From the sequence record MK817115.1: DNA of 64,000 bases, one strand, 5' to 3'. A model generated the notes under the pieces. It worked only from the letters and a program-made list of their open reading frames with translations, did not search any database and was not told the DNA's origin. Both the position numbers and the translations under genes were made by a program. The number at the start of each line of letters is the position of its first letter. Positions within the stretch are counted from its first letter, which is position 1. This document shows positions 3 through 14,685 of the stretch, in pieces.

Positions 3-1145
3 ATGTTACCTTTTGCAAGAATGGTTAAGTACGGGAATATTGCACCTGCACAAATCGGTAGATATAAAATATACAGTTCATCTTCTTCACTATTTTTATT
101 GGATACCCAAAAACACAATTTGTACAGTACATCGAACATTAATTATACTAGTGGTACAGGTAATGTTGAGCCTAAATTTGTGTTAAGTGCAACTAATGTT
201 AAAAGATTATTACTATCTGATAATAGTTGTGCAATGCAAATATATGAAGATATGAATGGGCGTGCAGCGATGTGTGGCACAAGAACTGCATATAGTGGGG
301 TTGCAAATGATAATGTACTGGTATGGACGGATTGCACTACATGGTTCACAAATGTAGGGTTGAATGTATCAGATATTCAGTACATGTCTGGTTTTTATAA
401 TCTGAAACTAAACATAGTTATGAATAATGGTGATTTGTGGTGTAGTGGGAAAAACAACACTACTACTATGTCATCATTTGGTAATAGCACAAATATCGAT
501 TCATTCAATCAGTTTACCAAAATAACAACAATATCAAATGTTATTAAAGCCACCGGGAATATATACTTATGTGCAGATAATACTTTATGGGGATGTGGTT
601 TTAACTCTTACTATCAGTTAGGGACAGGTAATCAAACATCCAGTATTAATTTGATTATGATGGCTTCTAATGTTATCGACTGTAATGTTGGTCTTCAAAA
701 TACTTATTACTTGACTAATAATAAAGAACTTTATGGATGTGGTACACAATTTGGTACAACTTACGGGAATGAATTTGGAACAGGAAGGCAGGGAACATCA
801 ATACAATATAAGACTCCTACTATAATTTTCACAAATGCAGATGGTCTGGCTGTTTGTGTCGGTAATATGTCTACTCATGTTATTCAATATGATAAAGTTT
901 TTAGTTCTGGTAATAATGCCCTTGCACAGTTGGGTGTAGGCAACCGTGACAATGTGTACACATATACACAATCATTTGATAATTTCAAAATGGATTCTTC
1001 TATAGTACGTGCAAACGTTGGAACATTGATAATGACAGCGGACAATAAGTTATATTACAGTGGGAGAAATGATGTTGTTATGGGTGGAACAAGCACACAA
1101 TACACGACGGTTTTCAGTGAAGTTAATATGTCATTTATACAATGA
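3..1145 (+). CDS. RCC1/BLIP-II-like beta-propeller, MLPF array member 1
   Basis: 380 aa, MLPFARMVKYGN start, GxNxxxQLGxG repeats (GFNSYYQLGTGN, GNNALAQLGVGN). Confidence 0.75.
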   Translation: MLPFARMVKYGNIAPAQIGRYKIYSSSSSLFLLDTQKHNLYSTSNINYTSGTGNVEPKFVLSATNVKRLLLSDNSCAMQIYEDMNGRAAMCGTRTAYSGVANDNVLVWTDCTTWFTNVGLNVSDIQYMSGFYNLKLNIVMNNGDLWCSGKNNTTTMSSFGNSTNIDSFNQFTKITTISNVIKATGNIYLCADNTLWGCGFNSYYQLGTGNQTSSINLIMMASNVIDCNVGLQNTYYLTNNKELYGCGTQFGTTYGNEFGTGRQGTSIQYKTPTIIFTNADGLAVCVGNMSTHVIQYDKVFSSGNNALAQLGVGNRDNVYTYTQSFDNFKMDSSIVRANVGTLIMTADNKLYYSGRNDVVMGGTSTQYTTVFSEVNMSFIQ

Positions 1146-1150
1146 ATTAA

Positions 1151-1217
1151 TGCCAGTACTTGATACTGGCTTTTCTTTTTTGTATTAAATATAGTATAAT
1201 GAATAAAGGAGGGAATT
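1151..1217 (+). repeat. Array intergenic module: hairpin terminator, TTTGTATTAAATATAGTATAATGAATAA, GGAGG RBS
   Basis: GCCAGTA-CTTGA-TACTGGC plus T-run, then near-invariant core. Confidence 0.9.
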
Positions 1218-2360
1218 ATGTTACCTTTTGCAAGAATGGTTAAGTACGGAAATGAAGCACCAGAACCAAAACCTCTATTTAAAAATAGATTACAAGCAAA
1301 TTATAATACTCGTTTTTATTTGCATGTTAATGGTGACTTGTACTGGTATGGTTCATCTTCATTTGGACAAGGTGGTAATGGTTCATTACAATCATCCACC
1401 GTATGGACCCGTGTGAATAATAATATTGAACGTTACTGGGGTGGTGTTCTTGGTTCCATTGCCATTAAGAATGATGGAACTATTTGGTTCACAGGTGCTA
1501 GTATAGTAATGCCACAAATCGGAACAAATACAAATGGGGTTTGGATTGATGTAACCCAGTACTTCACTGATTTTGGTGTCAGTGCTGATGATATTGATGG
1601 TATTGCTGTTGGACAGAATTTGCGTGTATTTTTGAAAAATGGAAAATGGTTCTACTGTGGTGCTGGCGAGGGTGGTGTATTTGGTAACGCATCAACAGCT
1701 AATGTCACATCGTTCAGATACAGCACTATAGAAAATGTTAAAAGTTATGGCTGTTCTTTGCTCAGTACTGGGTTAGTTCTTGATGATGGTTCCTATTGGT
1801 ATGCAGGAAATACTGTTGCTCCTGGTAGTACAACAACATCAAATATATTAAGTTTTACAAAAGACAATACGATCACCAATGCTATACAAGCTGTAAATAC
1901 ATACCGTACTTCATATATATTTCTTAATGATGGTTCAGTGAAGGTTGCTTCACCAAATGCATATGGTCAAGCTGGTGTAGGTAGAGTATCAGCAGTACCA
2001 ATGAGTACATTAATTCCCAATTTATCATTCCAAGGTGAAATAGAGTTGGTGGGTGGTTTATCCAACAACGAAGGGAATGGATGTGTTGTTAAAAATAATA
2101 ATAAGTTATATACTTGTGGTCGAAATACCTATGGTGCATGTGGTGTTAATCAAACATCCGAAAATATACTAACTTTCACCGAAATGGTTCTTGATGCATT
2201 AGAAGGAAGACGAATTTCAGGCTTCGTAATTGATAATTTCTATTCAATGATAATTGATGAAAATAACAATTTGTATATGAGTGGTTTGGCTGAACTTGGA
2301 AATGTTCCAGCCGTGAGAGTTCCAACCAGAGTCCCCGATTCCCTTCTACCGTGGAAATAA
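1218..2360 (+). CDS. RCC1-like beta-propeller, array member 2
   Basis: 380 aa, shared N-terminus, GRNTYGACGVN and YGQAGVG repeats, GGAGG RBS. Confidence 0.75.
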   Translation: MLPFARMVKYGNEAPEPKPLFKNRLQANYNTRFYLHVNGDLYWYGSSSFGQGGNGSLQSSTVWTRVNNNIERYWGGVLGSIAIKNDGTIWFTGASIVMPQIGTNTNGVWIDVTQYFTDFGVSADDIDGIAVGQNLRVFLKNGKWFYCGAGEGGVFGNASTANVTSFRYSTIENVKSYGCSLLSTGLVLDDGSYWYAGNTVAPGSTTTSNILSFTKDNTITNAIQAVNTYRTSYIFLNDGSVKVASPNAYGQAGVGRVSAVPMSTLIPNLSFQGEIELVGGLSNNEGNGCVVKNNNKLYTCGRNTYGACGVNQTSENILTFTEMVLDALEGRRISGFVIDNFYSMIIDENNNLYMSGLAELGNVPAVRVPTRVPDSLLPWK

Positions 2361-2367
2361 TGTAATA

Positions 2368-2433
2368 TGCCAGTACTTGATGCTGGCTTTTCTTTTTTGT
2401 ATTAAATATAGTATAATGAATAAGGAGGGATTT
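2368..2433 (+). repeat. Array intergenic module
   Basis: Same hairpin, core and RBS. Confidence 0.9.
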
Positions 2434-3543
2434 ATGTTACCTTTTGGAAGAATGGTTAAGTACGGAAATATTGTACCTGGTCCTAAAAATATAATTAAAG
2501 TTGGTGCTTCTACACAAGGTCAATTCTTATTGACTGATTCACATGATTTATATTACATAGGTAGAAATCAAGGTGGTGAATCTGGAAATGGTAATACCAA
2601 CACGGTATCTTCATGGATATTAGTAAGTGCAGATGTTTCTAATTTTTTCGTGGGTGATCGTACACTTGTTATTATTAAAAATGATAATACTATATGGACA
2701 TCAGGTCAAACGTACTGGTTCTCATCTTCTACGACTACTTCTTACAGTACTGTATTAGTTGAAAGGACTAATTGGTTTACTAATGCTATACCAGTCAGTG
2801 AAATTGCTAATATTGTATGTACAAATGGTTTAATATTTGTACTTAGCACTAATTCAGTACTCTATGGTGCAGGAGATAATGGATATCGTGGTTCTTTGGG
2901 TATTGGTTCATCATCAATTTATACATTAACTCAATGTGCTACGAACGTTCGTAAAGTAATGACCAATGCGAATGATAGTATGTATCTTACATTAGATAAT
3001 AAGCTATATAGTTCTGGATGGAATAGTAGTGGGCAGCATGGTACGGGGAACCAAACACAAATTAACACTTGGGGATTGCGTAGTTCTGGTGTAATCGATG
3101 CAGCCATTGGTGGTAATGCATTAAATTACTATAATGGTACATCATATTTCGTATGTGGTCAAACTCCAAACTTTCTTAGTTCAGGTACGACTACATTCCG
3201 TGCAGTTCCTGTAAGTACTTTGCCTAATAGTTCTCCGTTGTTTATGACGAATTCACCTGCATTAAATACTGCTACACAAATGGTAATTACTAGTACATAT
3301 CAAAAGGGTGTTGGGGCGAACCGTGGTTTGGGATTAAACAATTCTCAAACTGGTGCTATATATAGTGCTACCAATTTACAATTACCCGTTGAAGTTAGTG
3401 AGATTAGGGATGTTCTTTTTAGTGATGGTTTGACATCGATATTAACCAAAAATGGAGATGTGTATAGTACTGGATCGTATTACGCCATTCCAGGTGCAAT
3501 CGAGGATGTTGCAGTCTTTACTAAAATTGATTTACCAAAATAA
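2434..3543 (+). CDS. RCC1-like beta-propeller, array member 3
   Basis: Start reassigned to MLPFGRMVKYGN after AAGGAGG; 369 aa; GWNSSGQHGTGN. Confidence 0.75.
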   Translation: MLPFGRMVKYGNIVPGPKNIIKVGASTQGQFLLTDSHDLYYIGRNQGGESGNGNTNTVSSWILVSADVSNFFVGDRTLVIIKNDNTIWTSGQTYWFSSSTTTSYSTVLVERTNWFTNAIPVSEIANIVCTNGLIFVLSTNSVLYGAGDNGYRGSLGIGSSSIYTLTQCATNVRKVMTNANDSMYLTLDNKLYSSGWNSSGQHGTGNQTQINTWGLRSSGVIDAAIGGNALNYYNGTSYFVCGQTPNFLSSGTTTFRAVPVSTLPNSSPLFMTNSPALNTATQMVITSTYQKGVGANRGLGLNNSQTGAIYSATNLQLPVEVSEIRDVLFSDGLTSILTKNGDVYSTGSYYAIPGAIEDVAVFTKIDLPK

Positions 3544-3548
3544 CATAA

Positions 3549-3613
3549 TGCCAGTGCTTGATACTAGCATTCTTATTTGTATTAAATATAGTATAATGAA
3601 TAAGGAGGGAAAT
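3549..3613 (+). repeat. Array intergenic module
   Basis: Same core; hairpin variant GCCAGTGCTTGATACTAGC. Confidence 0.88.
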
Positions 3614-4810
3614 ATGTTACCTTTTGGAAGAATGATTAAGTACGGGAATATTGCACCAGGGCCAAGTCCAGTGGCTTTCTCTGACGTTCTACAACAACAT
3701 TACACAAACTGTATGTATCTACATACACCAACTAATACTTTATATGGTTATGGTAATAATAATTTATGTCAATTAGGTGTTGGGAATCAATCTATAGTTT
3801 CGACATTTACAGTACTTGCAAGGGGTTGTGCAGCCTTTTGGCTCGGTGTTCATGGTTCATTGATGATTGATTTGGATAATAGAATATACTACACTGGTTC
3901 TGGTGCTGCCTTTCCTGATTATGGAGATGCAACACTTGTGAATGGTTTTATGACACAATGGACGGATGTTACTGTTGCATTTAATAAAATTGGTGTTATT
4001 GCTAATATGATCAAGAGTGTACATATAGGTGAGAGTACTAGAATATTATTAACCGATGGTAGAGTAATTGCGTGTGGAAAAAACACTTATGGTGAATGTG
4101 GTTCTGGGAACACAAATGCTATCCCTACACTAACAGTTATGACTGACATGGGTGAAGTTTCTCAACTCGCGTGTTCATTACAGGGTACACACTATCTCAA
4201 AACAAATAAAGACGCATGGTTTTGTGGTAAGGATAATGTTGGTGCAAGTGGTTGTGGTGCTGCTGGTGTTGTACATCTTAATAAACTCGTAACAAGTAAT
4301 GTCGAATATATTAGTGCTACATATGATATAACTTGGTGGTTTATTAGAGGTGGTTATGTATACTATAGTGGTTCTAACTCGTTTGCACAAGCGGGTAATG
4401 GTACATTTTCATCAACTAATCAGCTTAGGCCCACTAGAAACTTAGATCTTGCTTCAATTGTAGTTGATGATAATTTTGTATGTCCTAGTAATATGGGGAA
4501 TAGTTCAATTGGTACACCTATGGCAAAATATGATCCGAATATTAGAAGTGGTGGTGTTAACACATATGGTCAGGAAGGTACAGGAAATAATAATATAGTG
4601 ACGAAGTGGAATACCTTTAACATTAGTGCAATCACTGGAGGATTTGACAATATTCTTATGGCATCTAAAGACTGGTGTAGGACAATAATTATTACTAAAG
4701 ATTACAAAGTGTATGCGTGTGGAGGATTTAATGGTTCTGGTGGTATCTTACCAGATGGTACTTATGCTATTAAAACATTAACATTAATGCCAACACAACA
4801 ATGGCAATAA
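3614..4810 (+). CDS. RCC1-like beta-propeller, array member 4
   Basis: Start reassigned to MLPFGRMIKYGN; 398 aa; GNNNLCQLGVGN, GKNTYGECGSGN. Confidence 0.75.
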   Translation: MLPFGRMIKYGNIAPGPSPVAFSDVLQQHYTNCMYLHTPTNTLYGYGNNNLCQLGVGNQSIVSTFTVLARGCAAFWLGVHGSLMIDLDNRIYYTGSGAAFPDYGDATLVNGFMTQWTDVTVAFNKIGVIANMIKSVHIGESTRILLTDGRVIACGKNTYGECGSGNTNAIPTLTVMTDMGEVSQLACSLQGTHYLKTNKDAWFCGKDNVGASGCGAAGVVHLNKLVTSNVEYISATYDITWWFIRGGYVYYSGSNSFAQAGNGTFSSTNQLRPTRNLDLASIVVDDNFVCPSNMGNSSIGTPMAKYDPNIRSGGVNTYGQEGTGNNNIVTKWNTFNISAITGGFDNILMASKDWCRTIIITKDYKVYACGGFNGSGGILPDGTYAIKTLTLMPTQQWQ

Positions 4811-4822
4811 TAGGAGAAAATA

Positions 4823-5992
4823 ATGTTACCTTTTGGAAGAATGATTAAGTACGGAAATATTGCACCAACACCACCGAAATTTAAAAAAATACTCGCCAAT
4901 AACTACAACGTTGCAGTTTTAACAAGCAGTGGGGATTTATATGTACGTGGGAATAATCAAAACGGTCAATTGGGTTTAGGTCACAAAGAAACAGTTACTA
5001 CATGGACGATTAGCACTTCTGGTGTTCAAGATTTTTGGTTTGGTAGTTCATCACTAGTGGTTAAGAAAACCGATGATGAAATATGGTACAGTGGGCAGTC
5101 AACTACAATTGGTATGCCAGGGGCATCCGTGTCAGTGTGGACTTCTGCCATGCCGACATTCAATACATTAACATTACCAATATTAGATATGGCAGTTAGT
5201 AATCAGACTACAAGTGTATTACTATCTGACCGAACAATATGGAGTAGTGGGGTAGGAAGCAATGGTCAATTGGGTAATGGAACTGCGACGAACAACATTT
5301 CAGGTAAATTCGTCCAAAGTACTGTTTCAACAGAAGAAGATCAATTACCAGTTAAATTGTTTGCCAGTAATTTAATGCATGGATATGTTACGTCGAACGG
5401 CTGGTTATACTACACTGGGCAACCCAATGCAGTTAGCACTAATGGCAGTGCGATATATAGTGTTTATACTAGTGCTCCTATTAGTCTAAGGAATTCCATT
5501 AATATCAAGTACTATACAAATAATGGAACTTCGATGGCGATGGCTATTGGTACAGATCCAAATGGCAAGACCGTAATTGCTAATGGCGGCCCTAGGATAT
5601 TTGGTGCACAGGCTGATGGAGTAAATGGTCAACTAAGTAATGTTAGGTCATTTGCTGTTCAAACCGAATCACTAATGCCACCAGGTGATGTAGTAAGTAT
5701 TGCTCATAATACTTCATATTATAACCAAGTTATTGCTACAACAGATGGTATATATTGTTGCGGCTACAACCGATCTACACAAGCTGGTATGTTAGGCATT
5801 GGTACATCTACTAACGCATTAGTATATACCAAAGCAATCGTACCTGATGGTTTTGATTATAGTAAATCGCAAATGGTAGGTGGGTATAACCGTACTTATA
5901 TAACTGATGGTAATTTTGTATATAGTGCTGGGACAGATGTCACATATGGTGGCGTTAGTAGCTTAGAATTTGTATTAGATTCACCAGTTTAA
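4823..5992 (+). CDS. RCC1-like beta-propeller, array member 5
   Basis: 389 aa; GNNQNGQLGLGH, GVGSNGQLGNGT; only an AGGAG RBS upstream, no full module. Confidence 0.78.
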   Translation: MLPFGRMIKYGNIAPTPPKFKKILANNYNVAVLTSSGDLYVRGNNQNGQLGLGHKETVTTWTISTSGVQDFWFGSSSLVVKKTDDEIWYSGQSTTIGMPGASVSVWTSAMPTFNTLTLPILDMAVSNQTTSVLLSDRTIWSSGVGSNGQLGNGTATNNISGKFVQSTVSTEEDQLPVKLFASNLMHGYVTSNGWLYYTGQPNAVSTNGSAIYSVYTSAPISLRNSINIKYYTNNGTSMAMAIGTDPNGKTVIANGGPRIFGAQADGVNGQLSNVRSFAVQTESLMPPGDVVSIAHNTSYYNQVIATTDGIYCCGYNRSTQAGMLGIGTSTNALVYTKAIVPDGFDYSKSQMVGGYNRTYITDGNFVYSAGTDVTYGGVSSLEFVLDSPV

Positions 5993-5997
5993 ATATA

Positions 5998-6062
5998 TGC
6001 CAGTACTTGATACTGGCATTCTTATTTGTATTAAATATAGTATAATGAATAAGGAGGGAATT
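5998..6062 (+). repeat. Array intergenic module
   Basis: Same hairpin, core and RBS. Confidence 0.9.
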
Positions 6063-7253
6063 ATGTTACCTTTTGCAAGAATGATGAATTATGGGAATAT
6101 TGTGCCTGTACCACTACAAATTAAGAAAATAATACCAACTGATACTGATGTTGTTGTACTTTATACTGATGGTCAACTATACGCACGAGGCAGTAATAGT
6201 TTTGGGAAGTTTGGTAGAGGAAATAATAATGCAGTAAGGTCGTGGACATTAATTAGAGAAAATGTCAAAGATTGCTGGATGACACAAGGAACTTTGTTAG
6301 TTCAAGATAAGGACTTAAATTATTTTTATTGTGGATATGGTAGTCATATTGGTTTAGAAACTAGTACTACATCATTTTTAAGTTATAACCAATATATTGA
6401 AAATTTGTACACACAAAGTTCAAGTACTTCAATTAAACAGATGTATGCAGGTACTACGTGGTTTACTTTCTTAATGGATAATAATACAATATGGAGTACA
6501 GGGTGGAATAGTGCTAGACAATTCGCAGATGGTACAGGAACTACTTATCAAATATCAGATGGTTCATTTGTTAAAGCGGTAACACCAGATGTAGATATTG
6601 CACAAATACAGTCAACAAATTACTGTGTAATGTTTTTTGATACACAAAATAATTTATATATTGGTGGTAGTACATCTGGCATAAGTACTAGTACCACATG
6701 GACACCATTTAATGAATATACTTTGTATAAGCCAAGTACCACATATACAAAAACATTACAATATACTGGTTGTTCAATTGGTGCTGTCAGTGCTTTAGTA
6801 GAGAATCCAAGTACAGGAGCACGTCAGTTCCTAGTAGGTGGTAACGCTAATAATGGGGCATGGGGTAATAACACTACGAATAGTACAGCACTAGCAGTAT
6901 TAGGGAATAATAGTACTACATTACCATCAGGAACTTATTATTCAATCCATACTGGATATGCAGCACAATCTAGTATACTAGTTACGAGTACAGGTGTATA
7001 TGCAACTGGTTTAAATGCGAGTGGTTATGCTGGTACATTAGGTGTTGGTTCTAATGTTACTATTGGTAGATTTACTATATGTCCAATGCCAGCAGAAATA
7101 TCATATTCTATGTATGATAAAATAAAAATATATCGCGGTTCGTATCGTACTTTTCTAACTGCTGATATGAAAAATATATATTCAACCGGAACGTATGATG
7201 ATGGTGGACCTAGTACAAATAGATATGTTCTGGATACACCTAGACAATTGTAA
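6063..7253 (+). CDS. RCC1-like beta-propeller, array member 6
   Basis: Start reassigned to MLPFARMMNYGN; 396 aa; GSNSFGKFGRGN. Confidence 0.75.
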   Translation: MLPFARMMNYGNIVPVPLQIKKIIPTDTDVVVLYTDGQLYARGSNSFGKFGRGNNNAVRSWTLIRENVKDCWMTQGTLLVQDKDLNYFYCGYGSHIGLETSTTSFLSYNQYIENLYTQSSSTSIKQMYAGTTWFTFLMDNNTIWSTGWNSARQFADGTGTTYQISDGSFVKAVTPDVDIAQIQSTNYCVMFFDTQNNLYIGGSTSGISTSTTWTPFNEYTLYKPSTTYTKTLQYTGCSIGAVSALVENPSTGARQFLVGGNANNGAWGNNTTNSTALAVLGNNSTTLPSGTYYSIHTGYAAQSSILVTSTGVYATGLNASGYAGTLGVGSNVTIGRFTICPMPAEISYSMYDKIKIYRGSYRTFLTADMKNIYSTGTYDDGGPSTNRYVLDTPRQL

Positions 7254-7260
7254 TAATTTC

Positions 7261-7324
7261 GCCAGTACAAAGTACTGGCTTTCTTATTTGTATTAAATAT
7301 AGTATAATGAATAAAGGAGGAAGT
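7261..7324 (+). repeat. Array intergenic module
   Basis: GCCAGTAC-AAA-GTACTGGC plus core. Confidence 0.9.
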
Positions 7325-8059
7325 ATGTTACCTTTTGGAAGAATGGTAAAGTACGGGAATAAAATTGAATATAAGCCAGATGGTGAACAATTAATCACGA
7401 CAATAGGAACAACACAATTTACAGTTCCTGCTGGCGTTACCGAAATATCAGTATGTGTTATTTCGCCGGGTGGTCAACGTGGTGCTGGTGGCGGCTTATC
7501 GTGGCGTAATAATATTCCGGTTACTAGTGGTGAGTACTTAAGTGTTTCTCTTACACATCCCAACACTACTACAGCAGTTGAAAACGGTTTATATCGTGGA
7601 ACTGAAAAACTATGTGTTAGCTTCACTGGTGAATATAGGGTTGGTGGACTAGGTGGGAAAGCTGCTAACGCTATTAATGATGGTGGTGGTAATGGGGGCA
7701 ACGCTGGTGTAAGTGGTGGTGCAGTCATTGGTGGTGGTGCTGGTGGCTACACTGGTAAAGGTGGTAACGGAGATGCAATCACTGGTGAAAATGGTGCTGG
7801 CGGCGGCGGTGGTGGTGCATTCTATAATACCTCGTTCATTGGTACGGGTGGTGGTACTGGTATCATTGTTCAAGGTGCTAATGGTATTGGCGGTAGATAC
7901 GATGGTTCATATAATGGTGGTGCTGGTAGTGGTGGTGCTGGTAAGATGTATGGTGGTGGTGGTAGTATATGGGATAATTTTTCTTATACGGCTGCTGGTG
8001 GTGGTGCTGTGCGAATAATATGGGGACGTGGGAGATATTATCCTAACAATTCAGTCTAA
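7325..8059 (+). CDS. Glycine-rich protein carrying the MLPF N-terminal tag (array member 7), resembling tail-fibre-associated Gly-rich domains
   Basis: MLPFGRMVKYGN then FTVPAGVTEISV..GG..GAGGG and many GGxG motifs; no RCC1 repeats; 244 aa. Confidence 0.65.
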   Translation: MLPFGRMVKYGNKIEYKPDGEQLITTIGTTQFTVPAGVTEISVCVISPGGQRGAGGGLSWRNNIPVTSGEYLSVSLTHPNTTTAVENGLYRGTEKLCVSFTGEYRVGGLGGKAANAINDGGGNGGNAGVSGGAVIGGGAGGYTGKGGNGDAITGENGAGGGGGGAFYNTSFIGTGGGTGIIVQGANGIGGRYDGSYNGGAGSGGAGKMYGGGGSIWDNFSYTAAGGGAVRIIWGRGRYYPNNSV

Positions 8060-8066
8060 AATATAG

Positions 8067-8131
8067 GCCAGTACTTTGTACTGGCTTTCTTATTTGTATT
8101 AAATATAGTATAATGAATAAGGAGGGGAATT
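8067..8131 (+). repeat. Array intergenic module
   Basis: GCCAGTAC-TTT-GTACTGGC plus core. Confidence 0.9.
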
Positions 8132-9283
8132 ATGTTACCTTTTGGAAGAATGGTTAAGTACGGGAATATTGCACCAGTTCCAGTAGTTCCTACAATAAAA
8201 GATTTTAAGATTGGCTTTTCACATGAAGTGTTATTGGACAGTGAAGGTGATGTGTGGGGTATTGGATATAATACCGCTGGTCAGTTGGGATTTCTGGACG
8301 CTAACACAAATTCAATAGGAATGTGGTCTAAGATACATGAGAATGTTAGATTAATTGGCGTTACTACCAATTATACTGTAGTTGTTACAAATGATAATAG
8401 AATACTTTACGCCGGAAATAACTTAATTTCTAGTACTACAACGCTTGGGTGGAACGATATAACGTCTAGTATGGGAGCGGTTGTAGTGGATAGCATCGAT
8501 GCATTATATTGCACAGATGGCATGATGCATATTAAAACTGCTGATGGTTCTTTATACGCATATGGACGTAATATGAACGCAAACGCTGGAGTTACTGGTG
8601 TTTCTGGAGTTATTAGTGTTGCAACTAAAGTTAGTGGTTTACCATCGGCTGTGAAAGATATACGATATACGTTTAGTTATGGTACAGTACTATGTCAATT
8701 AGATACCACCTCGGTATATGGATGGGGAAGAAATGTCAATGGTGAATTAGGTCAGGGGAACGCAGCCGCAGTTCCTACCCCATCCCAAAGGGCGGGTGCT
8801 TCTATTGCTATAGGTACTTCGTATAATGCTACTGCAATTGTTTCCGGTACTGCATCGTTGGTTACATGTGGTGGACAAAATGATGGTCAGTTAGGTAATG
8901 GTATTACTACTGCTGGTAATGTATACACATATGGTGCTAGAGCATACCCAAGCGATCTTAATAATATAAGAAGTCCAGTGGATTGCAGTACAACTTATAC
9001 ATCTGCATTTATGAGTCCAGATGGCATATATTACACGGGTTCGAACCGAAGTGTGTTTGGTGGTCCGAGCGGGGCTGCCACTGTTGCATTATATACCAAA
9101 TGTAGTGATTTACCAATATTATATTCTAATATAACACAGTGGTGTAGTGGTACTATTGGTGGTGCGATATGTAGCAGTACTGAATTATATCAGTGTGGGA
9201 CCGGTAGATACATTGCCGGAGATGGGCAGAACGCAACTAGGTATGGGTTTAGAAAGACACCATTACCTTGGGATGTTTATTGA
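8132..9283 (+). CDS. RCC1-like beta-propeller, array member 8
   Basis: 383 aa; GYNTAGQLG, GRNVNGELGQGN, GQNDGQLGNG. Confidence 0.78.
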   Translation: MLPFGRMVKYGNIAPVPVVPTIKDFKIGFSHEVLLDSEGDVWGIGYNTAGQLGFLDANTNSIGMWSKIHENVRLIGVTTNYTVVVTNDNRILYAGNNLISSTTTLGWNDITSSMGAVVVDSIDALYCTDGMMHIKTADGSLYAYGRNMNANAGVTGVSGVISVATKVSGLPSAVKDIRYTFSYGTVLCQLDTTSVYGWGRNVNGELGQGNAAAVPTPSQRAGASIAIGTSYNATAIVSGTASLVTCGGQNDGQLGNGITTAGNVYTYGARAYPSDLNNIRSPVDCSTTYTSAFMSPDGIYYTGSNRSVFGGPSGAATVALYTKCSDLPILYSNITQWCSGTIGGAICSSTELYQCGTGRYIAGDGQNATRYGFRKTPLPWDVY

Positions 9284-9289
9284 CATAAA

Positions 9290-9355
9290 GCCAGTACTCA
9301 AGTACTGGCATTTCTTTTTGTATTAAATATAGTATAATGAATAAAGGAGGAATTT
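9290..9355 (+). repeat. Array intergenic module
   Basis: GCCAGTACT-CA-AGTACTGGC plus core. Confidence 0.9.
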
Positions 9356-10531
9356 ATGTTACCTTTTGCAAGAATGGTTAAGTACGGGAATGTTAAACCA
9401 GCACCTTCGGGTGTACTGAAGATTGCTACATCTACAACACATGTGGGTATGTTGTTCGATAGTGGCAATTTATATCTACGTGGTAATGGTGCACAATATA
9501 GGCTAGGAAATGATAGTACTGCGTATTTACAAAATGGATGGATACAGTGTCCATATAAAGTTGCTAATGTTTGGTGTTTATCCGCAGGGACCATTATACT
9601 TACGACTGAAGGAGAATTTTACTTAGCAGGACAAATGGGATACCTTGGTGTGGTCAAATCGCCTGTTCCAGGATGGACAAATATTACATCAATATTGTCT
9701 ACAATACCAAGCCTTACTACAGTTCAAGATATAGCTTCTACTGAGACTGTCGCTTCAAATGGTACTTTATTAATTATGTTAAGCAATGGTGATTTATACG
9801 GGATAGGTAGTAATACTGGAGGTGAACTGGGTGTTTCTGGTGCAAAAGCGACACCGATTAAGATTGATACTGGTGTTACTATGATTGCTGGTACACACTT
9901 TGGTGGTGCTTTACATTATGTTAAAAATGGTCAATATTACAGATGTGGTAATAACGCAAGTTATAACCTAGGTACAAGTGCATCTAAACTATCCACATTT
10001 ACAGTAAGTACTGATATATCTGGAACAGTTATTGGTATTTCATGTACTAATTTGACGACTTCAGTACTTACATCGAATAAGGGTAATATTAGAGTATATA
10101 CTGCTGGGATAAACACTGATTATTGTTTAGGAATTGGGTATGGAGACACGAAGGTTACAATGAGTCCATTTAGTGCTACTCCCGAAATTAGTGGTATTAT
10201 ACCAGATGCTGGGTCGATGAACAATCACAGTTTGAATTATTTTATAATGGCAATGACACAGAATGGTAAACTTTATACATGTGGTAGTGGTGTTCCTCTT
10301 GGTTGGCCTGTTACTACTGCATCAGAAAGATCTTATTACCACCAGGTACAATATGAGGATATGGATGTTGCACCAGATGTTAATGCATTTTCAGTACAAG
10401 GTGGTTCTGGTGTGTTATACGCGTTAGTGGGGACTAATGAGGTGTACTGGTGTGGTAACGGGTCTATGTTTCAGGAACAGAGTCCAGGTACACAACAAGT
10501 TACAATGAAGAAATTGGTACTACCTGAATAA
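9356..10531 (+). CDS. RCC1-like beta-propeller, array member 9
   Basis: 391 aa; GSNTGGELGV; closest in sequence to member 12. Confidence 0.75.
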   Translation: MLPFARMVKYGNVKPAPSGVLKIATSTTHVGMLFDSGNLYLRGNGAQYRLGNDSTAYLQNGWIQCPYKVANVWCLSAGTIILTTEGEFYLAGQMGYLGVVKSPVPGWTNITSILSTIPSLTTVQDIASTETVASNGTLLIMLSNGDLYGIGSNTGGELGVSGAKATPIKIDTGVTMIAGTHFGGALHYVKNGQYYRCGNNASYNLGTSASKLSTFTVSTDISGTVIGISCTNLTTSVLTSNKGNIRVYTAGINTDYCLGIGYGDTKVTMSPFSATPEISGIIPDAGSMNNHSLNYFIMAMTQNGKLYTCGSGVPLGWPVTTASERSYYHQVQYEDMDVAPDVNAFSVQGGSGVLYALVGTNEVYWCGNGSMFQEQSPGTQQVTMKKLVLPE

Positions 10532-10573
10532 AGGCACGAAATGTGTTTAGAAAGACACTATTAATTAACATAA

Positions 10574-10639
10574 TGCCAGTACTTGATACTGGCATTTCTT
10601 TTTGTATTAAATATAGTATAATGAATAAAGGAGGGATTT
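10574..10639 (+). repeat. Array intergenic module
   Basis: Same hairpin, core and RBS. Confidence 0.9.
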
Positions 10640-11819
10640 ATGTTACCTTTTGCAAGAATGGTTAAGTACGGGAATATAGCACCTATATATGAATCTAGTG
10701 TAATTAAAATGCAAGCACCATCGGCTTTTACCAACAACACATTGATGATTCTGTATAAGAACGGTGATTTGTGGGGTATTGGCGGTAACAATGCTGGTAT
10801 ATTCGGTCTTGGAAATACAACGACACAGACCAAATGGGTTCGCTTAATGCAAAATGTGAAAAATTTTTGGTGCACAAGGAATGCTTCATATAGCTTAGTT
10901 CAGACCAATGATAATAAATTTTATTATGCAGGTTGGAACCTTTGGACTGGTACATCTAGTGCAGTTCAAAGTACTACATTTGTTGATTGTACGTCTTATT
11001 TTTCAGGTTTTAATGTGGATAATATCAAGGAGATATATCCAAATGTTCGTAATATGTTTTTACTAACAAATGATAGTGTTCTTTACGCAATAGGTGATAA
11101 TTCGACCTATGAGTTGGGTAGTAGTTCATCTACACTTACATCATTTACACAGGTTAATATTAATGTTAAAAAGGTTAGTTCATTTTTCAATAGTCCGACT
11201 TGGATAATTAAAAATGATAATTCAGTATGGCGATGTGGTAAAACTAGTACTGGTACATTGTTAACTGGTTCTGCTACTGATACTTTGACGAGTTGGACAA
11301 AGTATAGTTTTCCTACAGGCCAGTACCCCGTTGATATAATTTCATATAACAATATGTTGGGTATAGTTCTTAATGTAGATAATACTTATCCGCTATATGG
11401 TGTAGGGTCACAAAATTCACGGACAATTAGGAAATGGTGTTCTATCTAATACTAATAAGATATCTTTAACGCCACAAAGTACTTATTTACAATTAACTAA
11501 TGTTTCCGATTTTGAATTTATACAAACATATTCACAAAATCCTAGGGGATTATTATATAGAAATGGAAGTCGTATTTTTGGAACAGGGTATAATAATTAT
11601 GGACAGCTTGGTAACAATTCATCTAATAATGCTTCAATTTTCGTCCAAGCACAATTTCCAAATTCTGTAGTTTATGATCCGTCAACATCGTTGGTTGCTG
11701 CGAATGACAATGCATTATTTGCATATGTGAATGGGAAATTATACTACACTGGTATGTCTCCAGTAGGGACAGTTGTTGGTACATGGACTTTAACTGAATA
11801 CCAATTGCCACAAATTTAA
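10640..11819 (+). pseudogene. Array member 10, split by a 1-nt frameshift near 11418
   Basis: ORF stops at 11449, but GQLGNG...GYNNYGQLGN...YQLPQI* continues in the adjacent frame to TAA at 11817-11819; could be a sequencing error. Confidence 0.7.
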
Positions 11820-11829
11820 GGAGGAATTT

Positions 11830-12939
11830 ATGTTACCTTTTGCTAGAATGGTTAAGTACGGAAATATTGCACCTGAAGCTCCAAAGATAAAGAAAGTACT
11901 GTGCGGTCTTGATAATTTGTACGTCCTCTATGGCGATGGCTCACTTTATGGTTGTGGGGTTAATACGTATTTGCAGTTAAACGTTGAAAATACAGCAACA
12001 AGAAATACTTGGATATTAATTTCAGAAGGTGTTACTGATGCATGGGCTGGTGCGTACAATATTCTTTATCTCAAGGGTGAAGAATTCATAATGCATGGAG
12101 TTACCACACAATTAGGCACAGGAAATACTATGATTCCGTTGGGTGGTTTGAATGTTACTTCTTCATTTCCACATATATCTAATATTAAAATGATATCAAT
12201 TGGTGCAGATACAATGCACTACGTTGATGCTAGTGGTTCGATTGTTTATGGTAGAGGCATGAATGGTAACTATTCACTCGGTGGTGGGTATTCCACGGCT
12301 CAGAGTACTTTTGTTTCAGTTATTAATACCGGAGCTAATACAGTTCTTGATATATTGGGTACACAGAATAACACATTAATATTAACATCAAATAATGAAC
12401 TTCTCGGTTGCGGGAGCAGTGGGTATGGTTCACTTGGCGTAAGTCCAGGACAGTATACTACACTAGTAAGCAGGTTAACAAGTGTTAAACTATTTGGTGG
12501 TAACAGTACTGGTACTCTTGCTTATTCAGCCAGCAATATATACAACGCAGGTTGGCAGTATATTGGTCAACTTGGTAACGGTATTACAACGAACACACAA
12601 GTATATCCATTTGCATTTAACTCCACTACTATTGATAGTAAGATACATAAAATATCAAAATCAAGTGCGACTTCATATGTTAATATGTACGCAACAACCG
12701 AAGGAAAGATATACAGTACTGGTGAATTTGGTAGAAATGGTTCGGGAGGTGGTTTGAGTAGATTCACCAATACACTAACTTTAGATAATTACAACCCAGA
12801 AAAATCAGCATTATACACATGTGCACATTTTAGTATAGTATTTGATGGTAATAATCAAATTTATGCTTGTGGTTCTTTTTTGTATGTGCCAGGTCCTATT
12901 ACCACGAACTCATGGTCTGCAATTACAATGCCGAAATAA
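11830..12939 (+). CDS. RCC1-like beta-propeller, array member 11
   Basis: 369 aa; GWQYIGQLGNG; only an RBS upstream. Confidence 0.75.
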   Translation: MLPFARMVKYGNIAPEAPKIKKVLCGLDNLYVLYGDGSLYGCGVNTYLQLNVENTATRNTWILISEGVTDAWAGAYNILYLKGEEFIMHGVTTQLGTGNTMIPLGGLNVTSSFPHISNIKMISIGADTMHYVDASGSIVYGRGMNGNYSLGGGYSTAQSTFVSVINTGANTVLDILGTQNNTLILTSNNELLGCGSSGYGSLGVSPGQYTTLVSRLTSVKLFGGNSTGTLAYSASNIYNAGWQYIGQLGNGITTNTQVYPFAFNSTTIDSKIHKISKSSATSYVNMYATTEGKIYSTGEFGRNGSGGGLSRFTNTLTLDNYNPEKSALYTCAHFSIVFDGNNQIYACGSFLYVPGPITTNSWSAITMPK

Positions 12940-12952
12940 TACTATAAAACTA

Positions 12953-13019
12953 TGCCAGTACTCGATACTGGCTTTCTTATTTTGGATTAAATATAGTATA
13001 ATGAATAAAGGAGGGAATT
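12953..13019 (+). repeat. Array intergenic module
   Basis: Same hairpin; core TTTGGATTAAATATAGTATAAT. Confidence 0.9.
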
Positions 13020-14189
13020 ATGTTACCTTTTGGAAGAATGTTAAAGTACGGAAATATTAAACCAACTCTTCCTGAAATAAAGAAATTGGATGGTAGTCAA
13101 TTACATGTCGGATTACTTTATAGTACAGGGAATATGTACATGCGTGGTTCTGGTTCGAACTATAAATTAGGTACAGGGGATGCTAGTGATGTATTAGGTG
13201 GTTGGGTACATGTACCCTATGAAGTTGATGATTTTTGGGCGTGTGTATCCGGTACATTAATAAAGACTGTTGATAATAAATTATATTGTGCAGGTCTATA
13301 CATGGGTGGATATTTTGGGGCTAGTGGTTCATATGTTAACTGGACTGAAGTAACTTCATTATTTGTAGGTATTGACGTGTCGCAAATAAAGAATATAGAA
13401 TTTACGTCAGCGGGGACTTCCGGTAGTACACTAATATTGATGTTAGATGGTCGTTTATATGGGTTCGGTATGAACAGTAGATCTGAGTTAGGTGTTAATA
13501 ACAAAGTTGTATCTCCCATTCTTATAGATACTGAGGTAAGTGCAATAGGAGCACATAAGTTAGGCGGTTCATCGTTCCATTATATAAAAGGCGGTAAGTA
13601 CTACAGATGTGGAACATCGGTTGGTAGTAATATTGGAAGTTCTTCTTTAACTACTTTTACGGTATTGAGTATTCCTGATAACGTTATATCTATGCAAATA
13701 TTATATGACAACGTACAGTTATTATGTTTAGGAAGTTCTGGATATAGTATCTATATGGCTGGTTCTAATGATTATGGTGGAAGAGGTGTTGGTGGTTCTA
13801 CTGTTTACACTACATTCAGGAAAATAGATCTTACAGGATTTGGTGTTGTTCCCAGTGAAATACTATTTGAAAATGCTGGAAATGGTTATGTTAATATATC
13901 AACTGATAGTACTGGGGTATATACATGTGGTGGTGGGGCTGGTGTTAATGGTTTAGGTAGACCAACTGATGTGATACCAAGTTCACAGTTGGGTTCGGTT
14001 CAGTTCAGTACTGGAGTAGAACCATCAAATATAAGTCGTGTGTATTCACAGAGTTCGAGTTCTGTTATATATTGTATAGTTAATAATGAATTGTACTGGG
14101 CTGGTAGTAATTCATATTTTACTGATCAAACCACAAATACTGGTACACAATTTTCATTTATTAAGATGAAGGATATGCCTTCTGCTTAG
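13020..14189 (+). CDS. RCC1-like beta-propeller, array member 12
   Basis: 389 aa; MLPFGRMLKYGN; GMNSRSELGV. Confidence 0.75.
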   Translation: MLPFGRMLKYGNIKPTLPEIKKLDGSQLHVGLLYSTGNMYMRGSGSNYKLGTGDASDVLGGWVHVPYEVDDFWACVSGTLIKTVDNKLYCAGLYMGGYFGASGSYVNWTEVTSLFVGIDVSQIKNIEFTSAGTSGSTLILMLDGRLYGFGMNSRSELGVNNKVVSPILIDTEVSAIGAHKLGGSSFHYIKGGKYYRCGTSVGSNIGSSSLTTFTVLSIPDNVISMQILYDNVQLLCLGSSGYSIYMAGSNDYGGRGVGGSTVYTTFRKIDLTGFGVVPSEILFENAGNGYVNISTDSTGVYTCGGGAGVNGLGRPTDVIPSSQLGSVQFSTGVEPSNISRVYSQSSSSVIYCIVNNELYWAGSNSYFTDQTTNTGTQFSFIKMKDMPSA

Positions 14190-14194
14190 ATTTT

Positions 14195-14261
14195 ATGCCA
14201 GTGCCTTGTACTGGCATTTTTTTGTCCTAAATATAATAACGATTTACATTTGGAGGATACA
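14195..14261 (+). repeat. Degenerate array module before member 13
   Basis: Hairpin ATGCCAGT..ACTGGCAT plus T-run; core reduced to CTAAATATAAT; GGAGG. Confidence 0.7.
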
Positions 14262-14685
14262 ATGCTACCCTTTCGAAGAATTATCACATCATCAAAACAG
14301 AACATACAACCTTCTGTAACAAAAATAGCTTCATCTGATACAACAGTTTTTGCCCTTATGTCAGATGGTACGTTGTACAGTAGAGAATCTCAAGAGTTTG
14401 GGTTATTCATATTTTTCTAATCATATTATAACTTCATTGGGTGTTTACGCAACTGGTAATAACACAGGCGATAACGCAGGTCAATTGGGTATAGGTACAC
14501 AAACAGATGTGTCGGCCTATACCAAATGTGTACTACCAATAGAGATGAATATGAATAACGTATATGTTACAGCAACTTTATACAGAACTTACTTAACCGA
14601 TGGTATACAAATTTACAGTACTGGACAATATATTACAGACGGTGGAGTTGCCAGTACTGTATTTGTTAAAGATTCACCATTTTAG
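14262..14685 (+). pseudogene. Array member 13, internally deleted and frameshifted
   Basis: MLPFRRIITSS...DGTLYSR (stop 14420) joined out of frame to a C-terminus (GQLGIGT...YRTYLTDG..YSTG...DSPF) that matches members 5 and 6. Confidence 0.7.

Follow-up and report, generated by a model that had tools for sequence, protein, structure and literature searches.

A conserved twelve-residue N-terminal peptide on propeller, lectin-like and glycine-rich proteins of Rak2-like jumbo phages is a candidate virion address tag

In encapsulin cargo and in the adenovirus fibre, a short terminal peptide that stays uncleaved (the cargo-loading peptide and the N-terminal penton-binding motif, respectively) attaches unrelated or variable proteins to a capsid protein. 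The capsid-targeting sequence (CTS) of phage T4 is cut off by the prohead protease. This short conserved N-terminal peptide brings otherwise unrelated, fast-evolving accessory proteins (IPI-III) into the particle (PMC3012670). In the tail fibre gp24 of cyanophage Pam3, the part that is TNF-like and rich in glycine recognises the host receptor, and an N-terminal helical domain docks to the baseplate (PMC9608196). Rak2-group jumbo phages have large arrays of RCC1-like genes, labelled "DNA condensation", and hair-like fibres; such fibres on tail and capsid have been described for two phages, phAPEC6 and CBB.

The window analysed here is a stretch of 64,000 bases that matches bases 1-64000 of Escherichia phage vB_EcoM_phAPEC6 (MK817115.1) base for base. 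phAPEC6 is an Asteriusvirus with a genome of 352.6 kb and infects E. coli. The gene under study, here called member 7, is the plus-strand ORF at 7325-8059, which encodes 244 residues beginning with MLPFGRMVKYGN. Its true start is 7325; an in-frame ATG at 7307 falls within the -10/SD region. Thirteen starts encoding this N-terminal peptide (the "tag") were found in the window, 12 exact and one degenerate, all on the plus strand with gene starts from 3 to 14262, against a chance expectation of 0.09 for the pattern. The twelve exact copies head the genes of one tandem array (Table 1), and the phAPEC6 array runs on over the record origin to 348957. A thirteenth cassette at 14262-14685 is a broken remnant that starts MLPFRRIITSS... 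without YGN, meets a stop after 52 codons and has a C-terminal RCC1 piece that goes on in another frame.

Table 1. Features of the array, the member 7 gene and its cassette (positions in the window)
Feature	Position	Strand	Remark
Tandem array of 12 tagged genes	3..14189	+	11 RCC1-like propellers and member 7
Hairpin GCCAGTACAAAGTACTGGC followed by a T-run	7261..7279	+	terminator-like first cassette element; ends the upstream RCC1 gene
AT-rich promoter-like box TATTAAATATAGTATAAT	7291..7308	+	near-invariant in the cassette alignment
Shine-Dalgarno sequence AAAGGAGG	7313..7320	+	ATG 4 nt downstream
Tag codons 1-12, MLPFGRMVKYGN	7325..7360	+	
Linker KIEYKPD, residues 13-19	7361..7381	+	low to medium pLDDT, no secondary structure
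Residues 20-244, predicted TNF-like beta-sandwich and glycine-rich domain	7382..8056	+	phage fibre-tip type
Stop codon TAA of member 7	8057..8059	+	
Hairpin ending member 7	8067..8085	+	also first element of the following cassette (RCC1 gene at 8132)

The published annotation needs correction at several of these genes. Member 7 is missing from MK817115.1. In its place the record has "gp004" (7716-8018), a spurious valine-rich ORF that results from reading the GGN-rich stretch of member 7 out of frame, at +1. Three other tagged ORFs are also missing (3-1145, 2434-3543 and 6063-7253), and the record's gp002 (3506-4810) begins 108 nt upstream of a tag ATG at 3614. The last 2,423 bases of the record (350176-352598), which is deposited as circular, are 100% identical to its first (1-2423). 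This terminal repeat is probably an untrimmed assembly overlap, and gp550 and gp551 are accordingly copies of ORF 3-1145 and gp001.

We compared the nine of the window's twelve tagged genes that have the full upstream module, member 7 included. In the 66 nt upstream of the start, member 7 is 83-92% identical to the RCC1 copies at the DNA level, and the RCC1 copies are 85-95% identical to one another. The corresponding values are 86-97% and 83-100% for the 36 tag nucleotides, and drop to 47-61% and 39-69% in the next 36 nt, which places the 3' boundary of the cassette at codon 12. The RCC1 bodies of the array share 21-36% amino-acid identity. The Asteriusvirus tag is thus the final element of a cassette of ~100 bp, consisting of terminator hairpin, promoter-like box, Shine-Dalgarno sequence and tag codons. 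The hairpin is kept in 10 of 12 cassettes. The box TATTAAATATAGTATAAT, a putative promoter, includes TATAAT as well as a sequence close to the T4-type late motif; an ATAAATA late motif is used by structural genes of CBB (PMC5259590). In contigs of a wastewater DNA run, a tag's end is linked to other cassettes (window 6098-6100, 7261, 7311 and 9289-9303); the joints skip 1,210 or 3,204 bases or, once, jump back by 2,029. Either the population contains recombinant orders of cassettes, or the assembly jumped at the repeats. Parts of 7292-8335 are also covered by contigs from three RNA libraries; these give no transcript ends, and DNA carry-over is possible.

A conserved gene start of this kind could be a mere by-product of the duplication and homogenisation of an expression cassette, in which promoter, Shine-Dalgarno sequence and first codons are selected and the peptide has no function. 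Several observations agree with this. In phAPEC6, identity among the copies is 83-100% in the upstream 66 nt and in the 36 tag nucleotides, above strongly diverged bodies, and the tag's synonymous sites are nearly fixed, a sign that the cassette is homogenised in this phage. The wastewater joints coincide with the repeats of cassette and tag. CBB, GAP32 and five uncultured genomes, on the other hand, keep the residues with varied codons, unrelated upstream DNA and unlinked genes. The L, P, F, Y, G and N of the tag each occur there in 2-4 codons, and because both codons and upstream DNA differ outside Asteriusvirus, selection appears to act on the peptide. Conservation also ends abruptly after 12 codons, even between RCC1 paralogues, and the tagged proteins are strongly enriched in virions (see below). 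A functionless by-product is therefore highly improbable.

The tag has the consensus M-L-P-F-x5-Y-[G/A]-[N/D] and is always located at residue 1. The motif positions were used to find the tags, so that their invariance is partly by construction; independently of the motif search, every RCC1 ORF in the window was found to have the tag, and CBB_536, 548 and 549, known only as paralogues, proved to bear a Y-A-N variant. Position 9 varies (K, Q, E, V and other residues). Position 10 is Phe in the member 7 orthologues of JP4 (L109 4001-4738) and UE-S1 (L152 1501-2238), which start MLPFGRMVKFGN, and Y-A-N occurs in JP4_577 as well as in the three CBB proteins. The tag thus tolerates Y or F at position 10 and G or A at position 11.

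phAPEC6 has 15 strict matches to the tag, two of which are duplicates because the record ends repeat 2,423 bases, leaving 13 unique genes in one array. CBB has 11 tagged genes at four loci (Y-A-N allowed) and GAP32 has three, while no tag was found in the RaK2 genome, even with mismatches allowed. A scan of IMG/VR returned 43 loci with the tag pattern, of which only those on contigs of 348-378 kb open long ORFs behind a ribosome-binding site; the remaining matches look like chance, as the information content of the pattern predicts. By this sequence criterion, the tag appears to be limited to Rak2-like jumbo phage genomes of 348-378 kb. No paper mentioning or describing the motif came up in a literature search.

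When the first 14 residues (tag plus two) are removed, BLAST sorts the tagged payloads into nine or more clusters. The original prediction, that the tag is a portable module, had proposed a search for other payload types. When phAPEC6 and the other genomes were scanned, the Pfam classes found beside RCC1 and the glycine-rich body were Kelch, a 676-residue RCC1+Kelch double propeller and Laminin_G_3 (ConA-like lectin domains), along with several unknowns. At least three unrelated folds thus carry the tag: RCC1/Kelch propellers, a ConA-like lectin and the TNF-like plus glycine-rich fold. Uncultured relatives have tagged RCC1-like plus Kelch chains of ~670 residues (L105 1903-3930, L088 6416-8416 and L080 140-2158), in which the combination was confirmed by Pfam for L105 only.

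The body of member 7 was compared with known families and structures. Glycine makes up 28% of the body overall and 40% of residues 100-230. In a Pfam search (hmmscan) member 7 matched no family at E <= 1, including PF21722, RCC1 and Kelch, whereas its array neighbours match RCC1 families at E = 1e-17 to 1e-23. A word-based search retrieved 122 homologues, many with PF21722 (Gly_rich_2) and some with additional FN3 domains; P0030, a homologue with E = 4.7e-17 to member 7, aligns with PF21722 from position 5 to 225 of 226. The alignment of the homologues shows conserved VPxGVT and C-terminal VRIIWG blocks. Member 7 can therefore be assigned to the glycine-rich domain family (PF21722) through its homologues, not through a direct model match.

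An AlphaFold2 (AF2) model of member 7 built with 57 homologues reached a pLDDT of 92.6 and a pTM of 0.88. Its structural matches, which start at residue 18-20, include the Pam3 fibre (7ypx_A, Z 13.2, 158 residues, rmsd 3.1 A), the tail-tip protein of mycobacteriophage Bxb1 (9d93_Qa, Z 9.6) and the TNF-like plus glycine-rich (TG) domains of ALK/LTK (Z 6-7). In BFVD, a set of predicted viral structures, matches are named "glycine-rich domain-containing protein" (best E = 2.5e-14). A sequence profile of member 7 found no match in the PDB, so that the relation to fibre tips is structural only. According to the model, the body has a TNF-like and a glycine-rich portion and is of the type seen in phage fibre tips. 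Together with the cassette identities, these results bear out the original prediction that member 7 combines the complete upstream module and the tag with a glycine-rich body like those of phage fibre-associated proteins in place of RCC1 repeats. That the body might be a degenerate propeller, named at the time as a possible objection, is ruled out by the Pfam result and by the modelled sandwich and glycine lattice.

The tag is absent from more than 100 homologues of the body, including the nearest sister clade. In the list of 120 homologues it is present on only four: the cluster of the window's own protein, two metagenome proteins, of which one starts MIPFARIVKYGN and the other has a degenerate MLPFPIISNTN, and CBB_144. 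Tagless homologues, including two Seunavirus proteins, mostly begin M-[L/I]-E-[L/M]-L, a start common to those closest to member 7 (P0008-P0029, L013 2998-3840 and L014 2953-3690). We considered whether this start is a parallel tag of Seunavirus; with 3-5 matches per genome against 2 in a control, the two genomes examined showed no enrichment, and the idea was dropped.

A maximum-likelihood tree was built on the bodies with the tags cut off. Member 7 groups with the two tagged metagenome proteins (97%), and the sister of this clade (98%) is the tagless Seunavirus-type clade; CBB_144 lies away from member 7, at the end of a very long branch. A tree in which all tagged rows are constrained to group is worse by 12.2 log-likelihood units (AU test p = 0.085); given this value and the long branch, the tag may have joined the glycine-rich body once or twice. 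At least one N-terminal replacement of a fibre-tip-type protein thus made the junction between tag and body. Member 7 and its tagged relatives with the same body share 55-62% identity. CBB_144 is 36% identical to member 7 over the first 129 residues (E = 1e-17); it belongs to the genus Mimasvirus, is located between nrdD and nrdG, uses other tag codons and has no upstream DNA in common. With relatives this diverged already tagged, and CBB_144 tagged at an unlinked locus, the replacement is old rather than recent. The prediction that recombination had grafted module and tag onto a foreign payload thus stands as far as an N-terminal replacement is concerned, but not as a recent graft inside the array. 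Equally, the tag is not ancestral to all homologues of the body, since most lack it. The different positions, between nrdD and nrdG in CBB and in the RCC1 array in phAPEC6, indicate that the tagged glycine-rich gene moved locus between genera. In CBB, it sits just upstream of gp323c-like genes (L002, CBB 74304-79310); the syntenic phAPEC6 locus (L154, 242924-248285) has no tagged glycine-rich gene, which is found in the RCC1 array instead.

The member 7 protein was found in 18 of 36 related phage records with 83-100% identity, and the gene is dispensable and accessory. Within Asteriusvirus its dN/dS is 0.35-0.68, a range that is based on few differences and is not decisive. The orthologue in CMSTMSU is frameshifted. 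One metagenome contig of SRR12907740 (Logan) contains an orthologue with a clean 36-nt deletion (L148 1170-1320 compared with window 7240-7420), which takes part of the Shine-Dalgarno sequence, the start codon and tag codons 1-10; its body has further deletions, and 206 aa are called.

In the AF2 model of member 7, residues 1-19 have no secondary structure and a pLDDT of about 49-68, with about 49 for the tag. A model of the RCC1 paralogue gp005, computed from an alignment with an invariant tag, likewise leaves residues 1-20 unstructured at low confidence. These models depict the tag as a flexible extension outside the payload fold. Beta-propellers are often closed by N-terminal strands, and since most tag carriers are propellers, the peptide could be an integral element of the payload, such as a closing strand, that member 7 merely kept after its domain was replaced. 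The disordered N-terminus of gp005 argues against a closing strand, as does that of member 7. The tag is also found on lectin and glycine-rich folds, and tagless homologues of the glycine-rich body are complete. This explanation is thus extremely unlikely, and the earlier suggestion of a fold-independent tag is strengthened by the three or more unrelated folds that carry it and by its disorder in the models of two different payloads.

Published virion proteomes were then compared with the lists of tagged genes. The CBB proteome comprises 55 virion proteins of 554 ORFs (PMC5259590) and holds 9 of the 11 tagged genes (144, 247, 536, 537, 548, 549, 551, 552 and 553; hypergeometric P = 2.4e-8). 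All six CBB virion proteins without a GAP32 homologue are tagged, and CBB_144 was represented by 5 peptides with 34% coverage. For phAPEC6, with 62 virion proteins of 551 (PMC7247149), 8 of the 10-11 annotated tagged genes were detected (P = 2e-6). The four tagged ORFs that are absent from the annotation were unmatchable in this proteome, which accordingly could not register member 7. Three tagged RCC1 proteins are present in JP4 virions, and the annotated JP4 orthologue of member 7 is not in the list of 49 JP4 virion proteins (PMC12648861). GAP32_001 and GAP32_002, both of the annotated tagged genes of GAP32, encode virion structural proteins. Tagged proteins are thus strongly enriched in published virion proteomes, an association by mass spectrometry that is a correlation. 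It agrees with the predicted role of the tag as a targeting signal (CBB 9/11, P = 2e-8; phAPEC6 8 of 10-11; GAP32_001 and GAP32_002). The CBB mass spectrometry table also contains the peptides LLQYGNK, which is residues 7-13 of CBB_553 and is preceded by R, and IAPYQILYEMK, which is residues 14-24 of CBB_144 and is preceded by K. Their presence in virions indicates that the tag stays uncleaved on the mature protein.

The tag could be a T4-type CTS that binds the scaffold core, so that the proteins are packed in the head, in the inner body. After ejection into the host, the hypervariable propellers and the other modules would bind defence or other host proteins. T-even internal proteins are likewise a diverse set with only a conserved N-terminal CTS in common (PMC3012670). 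phAPEC6 has an inner body, where the authors of its description placed the RCC1 proteins, with the DNA inside the head, and a hypervariable paralogue array would suit an arms race. Mass spectrometry gives presence in the particle, not location. However, the tag is not removed and contains no conserved Glu or protease motif, its payloads include a receptor-binding fold of fibre tips and ConA-like lectins, known from the outside of virions, and distant homologues of the glycine-rich body are fused to FN3 domains. Internal packaging is therefore rather unlikely.

We consider it probable that member 7 is a genuine gene for an accessory virion protein and that the MLPF peptide is an address tag that docks payloads, preferably for display on the outside. 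Its product would consist of the flexible peptide (residues 1-12), the linker (13-19) and the TNF-like plus glycine-rich domain (20-244). The peptide would be an address tag specific to the lineage of Rak2-like jumbo phages and would dock each payload to a common acceptor in the particle. As the payloads are binding modules of the lectin, propeller and fibre-tip types, the outside of the virion is the likeliest destination. Member 7 in particular points to external display over internal packaging, because its fold is otherwise that of a receptor-binding fibre tip. We hypothesize that the tagged modules sit on the hair-like fibres of tail and capsid and serve there as interchangeable accessory adhesins, and that recombination or gene conversion keeps the Asteriusvirus cassettes near-identical among array members. 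Tagged genes are numerous in the haired phages phAPEC6 (13) and CBB (11), compared with three in GAP32 and none in RaK2. A bolder and more doubtful proposal, which we offer tentatively, is that the MLPF dodecapeptide is a universal plug that clips swappable receptor-binding modules to whiskers and capsid fibres, with recombination between cassettes reshuffling the adhesins.

Candidates for the acceptor were sought by phyletic pattern, namely presence in phAPEC6, CBB and GAP32 and absence from RaK2, where absence by tblastn may reflect divergence. The leads are gp162c, gp256, gp323c and two paralogues of gp323c. These paralogues of the virion protein gp323c (phrog_3573/26864) are unannotated phAPEC6 ORFs at 239579-242308 and 242325-242912 (909 and 195 aa), and they share its C-terminal domain of ~120 residues. 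The gp323c family is present in CBB (CBB_147-149) and GAP32 and was not found in the tag-free RaK2. Another protein, gp164c (L149 6413-6958), has a ClpS domain (E = 2e-5) and adjoins virion-protein genes in phAPEC6. A role of this ClpS-like protein as tag reader found no support; gp164c is also present in the tag-free RaK2.

The tag offers one testable explanation for both characteristics of the Rak2 group, the large RCC1-like arrays and the hair-like fibres, and the findings argue against the label of DNA condensation for the RCC1-like genes. A universal plug, if true, would account for the hairs and the huge paralogue arrays and would provide a ready-made display tag for jumbo phages. Fusion of the tag to a protein is suggested as a tool for loading it onto a jumbo phage.

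Several known systems resemble this locus in part. One protein with the same kind of body is Pam3 gp24 (PDB 7YPX), in which a TNF-like beta-sandwich is likewise followed by a lattice of glycine-rich loops, an architecture also known from S16 gp38 and the TG domains of ALK/LTK. Sequence identity to member 7 is only 17%. Docking of gp24 involves its N-terminal helical domain of 76 residues and needs a chaperone encoded alongside, whereas the 12-residue tag is all that member 7 has for this, and its gene has no chaperone gene next to it. The structural match spans gp24 residues 77-277 only, so that the tag takes the place of the docking domain. CBB_144 of the Pectobacterium phage shares with member 7 the combination of a tag, MLPFSPLIVYGN, and a glycine-rich body, but it has neither a cassette array nor the upstream module. 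The tagless proteins of Seunavirus (EspYZU08 and NINP13076) and of many uncultured phages have the full-length body, 42-52% identical and with VRIIWG; their N-termini are of the M-[L/I]-E-[L/M]-L type, in place of the MLPF tag.

As an address peptide, the tag resembles the T4 CTS, with which it shares the position at the N-terminus of otherwise unrelated accessory proteins of the particle. It differs in having no conserved Glu or cleavage motif and in being present in mature virions, and its payloads are large modules of the lectin, propeller and fibre-tip types, not small internal proteins. The peptides of encapsulin cargo and the adenovirus fibre differ in their sequences, termini and hosts. 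N-terminal address peptides are thus already known, and what is new compared with the T4 CTS kind is a different sequence that remains uncleaved on lectin-, propeller- and fibre-tip-type payloads.
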